Source: Piromyces finnis finn
Lineage: Eukaryota; Fungi; Neocallimastigomycota
Assembly (NCBI GenBank): GCA_002104945.1
Contig: MCFH01000005.1
Span: 806,001-870,000, forward strand
Direction: 5' to 3'
Length of the DNA: 64,000 nt
The notes below the pieces were generated by a model. The model had not been told where the DNA came from. It did no database searches and worked only from the letters and a program-made list of their open reading frames with translations. Made by a program: the position numbers and the translations under genes. Positions 15,901 to 21,143 of this stretch are shown piece by piece; position 1 is the stretch's first letter; each line of letters begins with the position of its first letter.

Positions 15901-17224
15901 TAACGCAAAGTGAATATATTCTTTACTTTACATTTTCCTATTTAGATAGTTCTTTTTTTCAAACTTTGTAAATTAATCGAGAAAAGAATTATTTTAATAA
16001 TTGATTATCGGATAATATAATTGTAACAAAAAATGCTAATAGAATAATAGTTATAATAATAATAATAATAAACAAACAAACAAACAAACAACAACAACAA
16101 CAAAAAAAAAAAAACCAAAAAAAAAAAAAAAAACCAAAACAAAACAAACAAATAATAATAAAAAAAAAAACAAAGAAAAGAGCACAAAATATTTTATAAA
16201 TTAAATAAAAATAACAACAATAATAATAGTATTAATAATAATTAAAAAAAAAAAAAAAAAAAAAAATTAAAAACAAACAAACAAAAATAAACGAACAAAA
16301 ATATTAATATATAAAGCAAATAAACAAGAAGAAACAATTATTTAAGAAAACAAATAAAAATCAAAAGAAAATCCTTCTGAATAATCACTAATAGATATTG
16401 AATTTGAGAGCAGATTTTTTGAAATTAAATTTCATTAATTTATTTATAATAAATTCCAGTTAACAGATTTAATACTTCATAATAAAAATAAGGAATAATA
16501 TATAAGATGTAACTATTTCATTTATTTATTATTGATATAAATAAAGAGTAATCATAATATATTTGTGGATATTTATAAAGTATAATAATAATCTGAATAT
16601 GTAATCAATAAAAGATTAAATTTAAAATTGAGTAAATAAACAATATAATTTATCATTCATATATTAAATAAATTAAATTTATAATTTATTAAGACTTTAA
16701 TATTTCAAAATAACAAAAAACAAAACAAAAATAAAAACAAAATAAAAGACTTTTTACTACTCTTAGCAAGTATAGTAATTAATAATAAAAGAATTTATTT
16801 AATAAGGAAAACAATAATTTATAAGAGGATAACTAAATTATCATATTAGATTTTTTATTCATTTTTATTTTTTGATTTATTTAAATATGTTTAGTAAGCA
16901 TAATGACCGAGAAAACAATTGAAATAAATGAAATAAAAAATAAAATCGAAAAGATAAATGATAATACATATATATAGAATAAATCTATTCAAAATTATAT
17001 ATATTTTTCGAAAAATTGTTAAATTCTATTAAAAAATAATGCACAGAATTAAAAACATAAATAATAAATACTAAACTTTTCTTTATACAAGAAATAAAAA
17101 TTATTAAAAATTAGTAATAATAAAAACAAATATCCACAAGAATTAAAAAATAAATTACTCGAAGAGTATAAATATTTAATATATTTATTAAAATTAATTC
17201 TGTTTATTCATATTTATTTATTAG

Positions 17225-18604
17225 GGAACAACAAGTTATAGATTATGATTGGATTGAAATAAATGATCCACAAACTTCAAGATCTTTTTATGCCAATATA
17301 AAAAGTGGTGAATGTTCCTGGGTAAAGCCGGATAATGCAAAAATGTAATATAATTTAATTTAATATTAAGCAAATTAATGGGAAAATAAATAATTTTTGT
17401 GTAAATTTGTGTAATTAATAGTTAATTCATATAAATTAACATTAAATAATAGAAAAGAAAAAGACGTTAATGGTGAAGAATGGTGGGAATTATTTGATAA
17501 TAATCATGGATTAGTAAGTATTAAATTTTTATAAAATATTTTTAAAGAGTAAAAGCTTATTTTATATTTTATAAACAATAAAAATAGCCATACTATTATA
17601 ATTTAAAAACAAGAAAAACTGAATGGAAACGCCCAGAAAATGGTAAGCATTCAATAATTTGATATTTTAATCATTAAATATTAGCTAAGGTATAAATACA
17701 TTAAATTTATAATTATTTTTAGCTACTATAATTCCACTTATTGCAATCCAAAATACTACTATTGCTGTTTCTATGCAAATGAAACTTCAACAAAAAGGCA
17801 ATGCCAGTGGAAATCAAATGAATGAACCAATGGTAATATACAATATATTGAGCTATTTAAATTTATAATAAAGAGTTTGTCATATAAGAAAAATTAAATT
17901 TCTTAGTTTCCTTTAATACTGATTATTATAAATATTTTTTTATTCATATTAAATACTTTAAATTTAATATAAATAATTTAGGAACCAAGTCCATCATTTG
18001 ACCAAAATCAACAAAGAACAAACCCAGTTCGTATTGATAATACCTCACCTGAAGCTGCAAATGCAGCACAAATCGGTAGAACTCAAGGAATTAGCAATCC
18101 AGTAATAAATAATGGTAAGTTTCTATCAAAAAAAAAAAAAAAAACATATAAAACATAATATATATTTTTTGATTATTAGAAATAAGCTAAAAATTTATCA
18201 TTATCTATATTATGGAATTATTTTAAAATTTGGATGGTGGATAATTTATCAATGTATTGGATTTTTTATATATATTTTTTGTTGGAATTATTGAATAATA
18301 TTAATAATTAAATACAAAATATATAATATGATATTATTACTTAATAAAAATACTTAAAAAATTGATACATTGGTGGAATATAAAATGATGGATGATAATA
18401 AATAATAATAACTTTAATAATGATAATTATAAAAATATTATTAAAATGTTATACTAATATAAAATTATAAAAAACATTCAACAACAACAATAACATATGA
18501 ATAAAATGTTTGTAATTAATTGAAATATTAATAAATGTTGAAATTTTGATAAATAATGAATTTGAATAATATGAAACATAAAATGAATGAATGAATAAAA
18601 TGAA

Positions 18605-18635
<31 letters not shown>

Positions 18636-20616
18636 TTGATGATGGAAAAAAAAAGATATGGCGGATAAAATGAATCCAACACATCCAATGAATCGTGCTA
18701 ACTCTGAAACACCTCCAACATTACCAGATGATCTAAAGGATAATATAAGTCAATTCCAAATCGAAGGCTTTGCTCATCAATACTTCATGGAACATAGAGC
18801 TGGAATATTTAGAAGAAAGGTACCTCTTGAAAAGTTATTGATTTGGCAAAAAGATGCTATTAAGGCTCCATTAATGGTTTTGAATAAAGAATTACAAAAA
18901 GAATCACCAAAATGTTTCAAATTAATTCAAAGAATAATGGGAGATCGTGCTCCAATAGGCCAATCTGAAGATATACAAGCACTATTAGAAAAGGGTATTA
19001 TGAATGGTCAATTAAGAGATGAAATTTATGTTTTACTTTGTAAGCAATTAAGTCAAAATCCAAATCCAGAAAGTTTACTTCTAGGTTGGCAATTAATGGC
19101 TGTTATTGTTATTAGTTTCCCACCTTCAAAGAATTTCGAAGGCTATTTGATTCAATTTATAAGACAATATCATGATAAAGAAGTTATACCACACCCAAAT
19201 GCTGATCCAAACCAAAAACAAACACTTTTTACTATCATTGTTCACTGTCATAAAAAGTTGCTTAGAATATGTCAAACCGGTCCAAAGGGAAAAGTTCCAA
19301 CTATTAATGAAATTGAAAGAGGAAAGGTAAATATGATTATATATATATATGTATATATTATTGTTATGTATTTGATTTAGGATTAACCTTTATTTTTTGA
19401 ATATATATTAAAATGCTGAATAATAATAGGAAGCACCATTTAAACCATCTGTGTTTGGTGAAACTTTACAAGATATTATGAGTGTACAAGAACAAAAGAT
19501 TCCTCAATTAAAGATTCCAATGATTATGGACTTTTTAGCTAAAGCTGTATTAGATCTTAATGGATGTCATACTGAGGGTATCTTTAGAGTAAGTATCATT
19601 TTATTTTACTATTCATTGTTAAAATGACTAATTATTAATAATTATCGATTTATGCATAAACAGGTTCCGGGTGATGTTGATATGGTTACAGGTAATTATA
19701 AATGATAAAAATAAGTTAAAAATTGTTTAAGCTTATGTAGTAAATATGACTATTTTATATTTTTATTAATAATAGAATTAAGATGTAGAGTTGATCAAGA
19801 TCAATATAATTTAGGAAGTATAAAAGGTAAAGATTGTCAAATTATAAACAAATGTAAAATAATTGTAAGCGATTTAAGTATTAATCTTTTTTATTATAAA
19901 AAAAAAGATCCAAATGTACCTGCTTCTTTGTTAAAGTTCTGGCTTCGTGATCTTGCTGATCCTTTAATTCCAACCGCTAATTAATATCCTTTTAATCATA
20001 AAAAATATTATTATATAATTTATTTTTAATTAATTTTATTATGGTTATTTTATATTATTTAAATTTATTATGATCCTTAACAGATATGTTTACTCAAGAA
20101 TGTATTGATGTAGGTGCTAAAGAAGGTCAAGAAGGAACAACAGAAAATGCATGGAATATAATAAAAATATTACCTGAAACTAATCGTAGAGTTGTAAATT
20201 ATATGATTAACTTCCTTAGAGTAAGTTAAAGAATGCGTTAATATGATTGATGTTAAACAAGTATTAAAGAAATGAATTTAAAAATTTAATTAATAAATTT
20301 AAATAACATAGATTATTGCTGATCAAAGAAATCAACCAATAACTAAAATGACATTAGCAAATTTAGCTATGGTATTCGCACCTAACTTTTTAAGATGTCC
20401 AAGGTATATTCAATAATAGTTATTAAAATAAAAAAGTAGTATTTTTTTTAAGGCAAATTAATGCTAATTAGAAATATTATGTATATTTTATAAAATAGTG
20501 ATAATCTTACTACTATTTTCGATAATACTAAATTTGAACAAGCATTTTTAAGAATCCTTATATTAAATGGATCTGATTTAGATGATCCTAATGGTCCATT
20601 ACCACCAAAAAATTAA
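17225..20616 (+). CDS. WW-WW-MyTH4-RhoGAP protein (ARHGAP39/Vilse-like); exons 17225-17344, 17453-17513, 17588-17642, 17723-17832, 17982-18114, 18656-19326, 19430-19588, 19664-19691, 19776-19826, 19908-19983, 20094-20220, 20312-20403, 20499-20616; first exon upstream and not located with certainty
   Basis: WW motifs DWIEINDPQTSRSFYAN..GECSWVKP and WWELFD...PYYYN..TRKTEWKRP, then IIPLIAIQ. MyTH4 region FAHQYF..HRAGIFRRKVP...LRDEIYVLLCKQL. RhoGAP region EGIFRVPGD...ASLLKFWLRDLADPLIP...KMTLANLAMVFAPNFLRCP. All junctions keep frame; one needs an AT-AC intron. Confidence 0.88.
19984..20093 (+). other. U12-type (minor spliceosome) AT-AC intron
   Basis: 5' splice site ATATCCTTTT, branch point TCCTTAAC at 20074-20081, 3' end TTTAC. 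Removal gives PLIPTANYQECI. Without splicing there is an in-frame TAA at 19982-19984 and no GT donor nearby. Confidence 0.9.
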
Positions 20617-21143
20617 TTTTTATAAATATTAATTTAAGAGTAATAAATGAAGAGAAATATGATTTTATATAATCACTTTTCGTAATTTGTTATAAATAAA
20701 TATTAATCTTTTACTATTTTTAATTCAATAATCTATATCATTAATCGGTTTACAAAATAAAATAATAAAATTTATTTTAAAAATATATAAATCAATAAAA
20801 AGTATTTTTTTTTTTTTTTAAAAAAAGAAAAAACTAAACAAAAAATTAAAAAAAAAAAAAATAATGAGAAAAAATATATAAATAGATTTTTTTCTTAAAG
20901 AAAGCAAAGATATTAGATAACACTACAATCAAATTGTTTAAACAATTAGCAAATGAAATTTAGTAAAATAATAGACAAACAGATCATAATAAATAGAAAT
21001 ATATAGATTATAATCAATGTTAGGTTAATTATTAATTAGAAATTCAAAAAAAAAAAAAAAAAAATCAAATCATACAATATTTTTTTTTTTTTAACTTTAC
21101 AATTATATTTTTTATAAATAAAATCAAAATAAAATTTTTTTAC

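Follow-up and report, generated by a model that had tools for sequence, protein, structure and literature searches.

The stretch 19984–20093 of the window, by which we mean the whole 64,000-nt piece of Piromyces finnis DNA that was analyzed, is very probably a U12-dependent AT-AC intron in a gene encoding a WW-WW-MyTH4-RhoGAP protein. A first-pass annotation had proposed a U12-type AT-AC intron in a RhoGAP gene at this place, and the proposal was borne out by a joint in RNA-derived contigs, by conserved motifs, and by candidate genes for the minor snRNAs. The assignment to the U12-dependent class rests on the motifs, on their conservation, and on the snRNA gene candidates that the genome contains. 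Animals, plants, and early-diverging fungi have U12-type AT-AC introns with the same 5′ motif ATATCCTTT, the same branch motif TCCTTAAC located 12 nt from the 3′ end, the same AT-AC termini, and a non-zero phase, and there is no essential difference between those introns and the one described here. The coordinates of the features are collected in Table 1.

Table 1. Features of the host gene and its AT-AC intron, and loci elsewhere in the genome and in other organisms. Bare numbers are positions in the window.
Feature	Position	Strand	Basis
Host gene WW-WW-MyTH4-RhoGAP	17220..20616	+	RNA joints, Pfam profiles, tblastn of relative P0003, WW match
Upstream exons	~17220-17345, 17454-17513, 17600-17644, 17722-17832, 17982-18113	+	Homology only (P0003, tblastn)
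RNA-defined exons	18648-19324, 19428-19588, 19664-19691, 19776-19826, 19908-19983, 20094-20220, 20312-20403, 20499-20616	+	Contig joints
Exon upstream of the intron (exon 5, with the MyTH4 exon as exon 1), ...PNVPASLLKFWLRDLADPLIPTAN + TA	19908..19983	+	RNA joints; RhoGAP profile 54-74
U12-type AT-AC intron (very probable), 110 nt, phase 2	19984..20093	+	RNA joint 19983->20094 and sequence reading
5′ splice-site motif ATATCCTTT, minor-class consensus	19984..19992	+	Sequence; invariant in two related lineages; U11-locus complementarity
Branch-site motif TCCTTAAC, 12 nt before the downstream exon	20074..20081	+	Sequence; U12 pairing; relatives
3′ terminal AC	20092..20093	+	Sequence and RNA joint
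Exon downstream of the intron, (Y)QECIDVGAKEGQ...NYMINFLR	20094..20220	+	RNA joints; RhoGAP profile 79-119
Stop codon of the host gene	20614-20616	+	
Minor snRNA loci (candidates)	C189:428380-428555, C112:211500-211648, C152 ~317445-317628, C90:253883-254011		
U6atac candidate	L002:1501-1649 (G000:C112:211500-211648)	+	
U11 locus (candidate)	L003:1430-1620 (G000:C152, ~317445-317628)	+	Rfam match and upstream box
Further AT-AC intron candidates	L005, L006, L010, L017, L020, L021, L028, L031		
Other minor-intron candidates	L012 (GT-AG), L025 (AT-AG)		
More distant homologues of the host gene	Racocetra fulgida L044; L045; L048-L051 (~50% G+C)		
Repeated stretch of at least 79 nt, examples	C1:484805-484883, C42:24342-24420, C45:6160-6238		

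The exon before the intron reads ...CCA ACC GCT AAT TA with its last base at 19983, and the intron opens with ATATCCTTTT from 19984, so that ATATCCTTT stands right at the exon end and agrees with the minor-class 5′ splice-site consensus /RTATCCTT(T). The branch motif, with its 12 nt to the exon, falls within the distance of about 10 to 15 nt from the 3′ end that is typical of this class. It is directly followed by an AG (20082–20083), and the intron itself ends in TTTAC at 20093, after which the exon restarts at 20094 with T CAA GAA TGT ATT. Every letter that had been read here in the first pass, namely, the donor region, the branch motif, the TTTAC end, and the exon flanks, was present. The intron splits the tyrosine codon TA|T, and its excision yields PLIPTANYQECI. 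It is short and, like the rest of the genome (19.7% G+C), extremely AT-rich. Either motif taken singly was no rarer than chance in the 64-kb window, where ATATCCTTT occurred once against 2.6 expected occurrences and TCCTTAAC twice against 1.4.

Excision at these termini was found in RNA-derived contigs. Contigs of the runs X1, X2, and X4, from the three studies P1, P2, and P3, carry the predicted junction 19983->20094, skipping 110 nt with AT..AC ends; the ambiguity of the joint was 0 letters, and its shorter side comprised 81 matching letters. In the part of the window from 18600 to 20650, these contigs are colinear with the gene and skip seven stretches: six GT..AG introns and the AT..AC intron. 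In four runs, approximately half of the words sampled from the gene were present, as expected for spliced RNA. The runs were labeled "RNA? (a guess)", and the RNA origin of the contigs was deduced from the missing introns: because every intron is missing from them, the contigs must derive from cDNA or mRNA. The same excision was seen in transcripts of relatives (L034 and L035, see below).

The use of assembled contigs rather than raw reads, together with the guessed RNA label, leaves some room for an artifactual joint, produced by template switching of the reverse transcriptase, by misassembly, or by a strain whose DNA lacks the 110 bases. We regard such an origin as extremely improbable. Template switching needs a repeat, and the identical joint occurred in three studies with no letters shared across the junction ("both" = 0). 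All six GT-AG introns were missing as well, which marks the contigs as cDNA-derived. In addition, two relatives provide both a genomic copy that contains the intron and a transcript that does not, and the joined frame fits the pattern of the RhoGAP family.

Minor introns are often inefficiently spliced, and contigs are blind to the level of retention and drop rare variants; the AT-AC form could on these grounds be a minor isoform, with most of the product spliced at other boundaries or keeping the intron. This is very improbable, because the AT-AC joint was the sole form in three runs and two alternatives lead to stop codons. Retention of the intron produces an immediate stop (AAT TAA, with the TAA at 19982–19984), and use of the AG at 20082–20083 as the acceptor for the AT donor leads to TAA as well. 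There is no GT in the last 20 nt of exon 5 and no GT or GC donor close to the exon end, in agreement with the initial reading that a GT donor is absent and that the unspliced frame stops at once.

The AT-AC joint also restores the protein. The Pfam RhoGAP profile is colinear over exons 5, 6, and 7 (profile positions 54–74, 79–119, and 123–147), and positions 75 to 78 are taken up exactly by the four residues around the AT-AC joint (A, N, the split Tyr, and Q); one RhoGAP exon scored above the profile cut-off. The spliced frame thus fits the profile, as anticipated from the observation that excision restores the RhoGAP pattern PLIPxxxYxxCI. These results come from exons searched singly. The exon at the beginning of the RNA-defined part encodes a MyTH4 domain (97.1 bits, E 9.5e-28), and the arginine-finger motif GIFR lies at the end of exon 2. 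A transcript fragment of a relative, P0003, which contains WW and MyTH4 domains, was mapped by tblastn to the exons at ~17220–18113; the first of these encodes a WW domain (28.3 bits), and a second WW domain is interrupted by an intron (17513 | 17600). Since homology to P0003 places the end of the preceding exon near 18113, the ATG at 18658, in the MyTH4 exon, is an internal codon and not the start codon. The same homology implies a low-complexity intron of ~540 nt (18114–18654), which is unusually long in comparison with the other introns of the gene (75–110 nt). The order WW-WW-MyTH4-RhoGAP is common to the P. finnis gene and the animal ARHGAP39/Vilse (CrossGAP) RhoGAPs, a likeness in domain order, and no literature linking ARHGAP39 to minor introns was found in the library searched.

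Homologues of the MyTH4 exon with 86 to 89% identity were found in metagenomes and metatranscriptomes, and they allowed the intron to be compared among related lineages. One genomic lineage (L036/L037) has a 124-nt intron at the same codon, with the arrangement ATATCCTTTT ... TCCTTAAC + 12 nt ... AC, and a second (L043) has a 192-nt intron, again at the same codon, reading ATATCCTTTT ... TTCTTAAC + 12 nt ... AC. The 5′ motif ATATCCTTT is invariant in these two lineages, and the transcript contigs L034 and L035, which belong to them, read AATTA|TCAAGA, a junction identical to that of P. finnis. Across the relatives, the intron has thus kept its ends and its branch motif, and its interior has diverged in sequence and length. 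As judged from this pattern, purifying selection is acting on exactly the elements that are read by the minor spliceosome. Short fragments of the MyTH4 exon with 95 to 99% identity were also found in run X5, a bovine gut metatranscriptome, on positions 18763–19325 of the window; these indicate that close relatives of the horse-derived P. finnis are transcriptionally active in cattle.

We then turn to the components of the minor spliceosome, for which the genome contains one candidate per snRNA, each scored against the Rfam gathering cut-off (GA). The U12 (66.6 bits, GA 53) and U6atac (52.1 bits, GA 33) candidates exceeded their cut-offs, and the U11 (38.2 bits, GA 39) and U4atac (49.2 bits, GA 53) candidates were slightly below theirs. 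The first-pass annotation had deduced that the organism possesses U11, U12, U4atac, and U6atac, and candidate genes for all four are indeed present, two of them above the cut-offs. The U12 candidate carries GUAAGGA and an Sm site, and its GUAAGGA pairs with the branch site of the intron at a computed −7.9 kcal/mol. Nucleotides 3 to 13 of the U4atac candidate are the exact reverse complement of AGAUAAGGACG in U6atac, giving a perfect stem II of 11 bp, and its UGCCA pairs with UGGCA of U6atac. Because a separate major U4 (89.9 bits) exists in the genome, the U4atac candidate is not simply U4.

The U11 candidate lacks the box that binds the 5′ splice site at its Rfam-aligned start (L003:1501). 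The sequence AAAGGGUAU is located 69 nt upstream of that start, at L003:1432–1440, and can form 9 bp with AUAUCCUUU at the 5′ splice site of the intron (computed, −8.7 kcal/mol). When the RNA was extended to AAAGGGUAU, it folded with a long additional stem (z = −2.7). These results suggest that U11 is probably ~185 nt long, with an AT-rich insertion in the 5′ stem-loop and the AAAGGGUAU box inside the RNA; such an insertion would explain the subthreshold Rfam score. Both intron motifs therefore have a complementary partner, in U12 and, given the inferred inclusion of the box in the RNA, in U11. A match to a SNORD14-like C/D box snoRNA was observed ~550 nt from the U11 locus, on the minus strand (L003:2162–2325); it scored 52 bits against a cut-off of 64 and contains an insertion of 73 nt. 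As for proteins, a profile search detected the ubiquitin-like domain PF18036 (38.6 bits, L047), which we take to be the domain of SNRNP25 (25K), and a CHHC zf-U11-48K finger (30.4 bits, L033), a family that is not specific. A Pfam search for PDCD7 (U11-59K) gave no match in the genome, though its control was also silent.

The U6atac candidate, the sole U6atac found, deviates from the consensus in the region that pairs with the 5′ splice site. It reads GCCGAGAGA in place of AAGGAGAGA, so that the box is GCCGA instead of AAGGA, and no canonical copy within three mismatches was found in the genome. Pairing of the intron's 5′ splice site with an AAGGA box is accordingly not available: the GCCGA box gives −3.0 kcal/mol, compared with −8.4 kcal/mol for the consensus box, and the 5′ splice sites in the genome stay canonical ATATCCTTT despite the variant. 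We considered whether the box is a novelty, but it is the CC variant ([GU]CCGA) already described in cnidarians, Trichoplax, a sponge, Acanthamoeba, Physarum, a moss, and oomycetes (Davila Lopez et al. 2008, PMC2396436). The P. finnis candidate has the same form of box and can pair with U4atac, as described above. In the portion of that paper on which we draw, the U6atac of the fungi Rhizopus and Phycomyces is of the AAGGA form, and a fungal CC variant, unlike what we find in P. finnis, is not mentioned; the pairing mismatch of the CC variant is noted there for other species that splice U12 introns (PMC2396436). Because the same mismatch is documented in U12-splicing species, the weak pairing of U6atac does not exclude the U12 class. 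The CC variant in a fungus is a small addition to what is known and not a new kind of U6atac. A search with the 238-aa exon that neighbors the U6atac gene, which might have led by synteny to the U6atac of relatives, gave no homologues.

A small class of animal AT-AC introns uses the major spliceosome, and the termini by themselves do not fix the type of spliceosome. Splicing of the present intron by the major (U2-type) machinery would also be compatible with the weak pairing of the U6atac candidate, but we consider it improbable. The 5′ site is a full minor-class consensus and not a U1-type site, and the branch motif is perfect and correctly spaced. Both motifs are kept in relatives in which the interior has diverged, the U12 candidate and the box at the U11 locus are complementary to them, and the pair recurs in further genes of the genome. 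For the U12-dependent intron, the established mechanism of minor splicing would proceed as follows. The U11/U12 di-snRNP would contact the 5′ motif via U11 and the branch motif via the GUAAGGA of U12, with the branch adenosine expected to be bulged ~13 nt from the 3′ end. Next, the U4atac/U6atac.U5 tri-snRNP would join, U6atac would displace U11, and U12 and U6atac would catalyze both transesterifications.

The recurrence of the motif pair was examined in the 56-Mb genome. The ordered pair of ATATCCTTT and TCCTTAAC, 30 to 250 nt apart, occurred 29 times, compared with seven times for a reversed-pattern control. In ~10 of the 29 strict-pattern pairs, an AC follows the branch motif after 10 to 17 nt (10–13 nt in all but one), and each of these pairs has at least 34 open codons on either side in compatible phase; the chance of such open flanks is ~0.003 each, at 0.096 stops per codon. 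The hosts of the candidates include ATG9 (L031), a CLC chloride channel (L028), a BRCT protein (L017), and POLR3C (L020). In ATG9, the two flanks cover profile positions 415–451 and 453–478, and the split codon fills position 452. The only convincing GT-AG case among the strict-pattern pairs is L012, which gives a ratio of AT-AC to GT-AG of ~9 to 1 among the candidates, unlike in most species, in a small sample selected by strict motifs. The consensus minor introns of P. finnis thus appear to be overwhelmingly AT-AC. Relaxed motif patterns were also tried for this ratio and were dropped, as they were swamped by a repeat of ~30 copies (ATATCCTTGAGTTCC...) and by antisense matches in coding sequence; the strict pattern alone was usable for a genome-wide count. 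In ~30 places on many contigs, often as inverted pairs a few kilobases apart, an almost identical sequence of at least 79 nt (ATATCCTTGAGTTCCTTCTTCAACTCC...TTTTCCTTGAC) was observed. It represents a multicopy gene or a mobile element, and it contaminates loose scans for minor-intron motifs.

The age of the intron was considered from more distant homologues. Six of these read through the position uninterrupted as P[LVI]IPxxxYxxCI, which indicates that the spliced product of P. finnis is correct. The intron is absent at this RhoGAP codon in 6/6 of these homologues, including one from the Glomeromycotina, a group reported to be rich in minor introns. Since the intron is not shared with any of the six, the data give no date in the opisthokont ancestor, and an origin there, which the first-pass annotation had raised as a possibility, is left unsupported. 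Its presence in three Piromyces-like lineages and its absence from all six distant homologues could be read as a gain of this minor-class intron within the lineage of the anaerobic gut fungi, as opposed to inheritance. Such gains are considered extremely rare for minor introns, and we hold this reading to be possible but unlikely. If true, the gain would have arisen in a lineage with a CC-variant U6atac and, apparently, mostly AT-AC minor introns.

Minor splicing in P. finnis is already published. The species is named as one of the fungi in which minor introns and minor snRNAs occur (Larue & Roy 2023, PMC10639083), and 129 minor introns are given for Neocallimastix californiae (Olthof et al. 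2024, PMC11347168). Both studies concern the same lineage, that of Larue and Roy the same species, and both reach the same conclusion on minor introns and snRNAs. Their statements are at the level of surveys based on annotation and Infernal, whereas the present analysis combines an RNA junction, conservation in relatives, and base-pairing for one intron. The intron is therefore a correct but ordinary finding.

What the case provides is a well-documented example, in which a call made from sequence only proved right to the base and is accompanied by an RNA junction, conservation, and matching snRNA candidates. It is useful for the correction of gene models in anaerobic gut fungi, because predictors limited to GT-AG introns would truncate or misjoin such genes. 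For specialists, it adds a CC-variant U6atac, a U11 with a probable large insertion that hides the 5′-splice-site box from Rfam, and an apparent bias of the minor introns of this fungus toward AT-AC termini.
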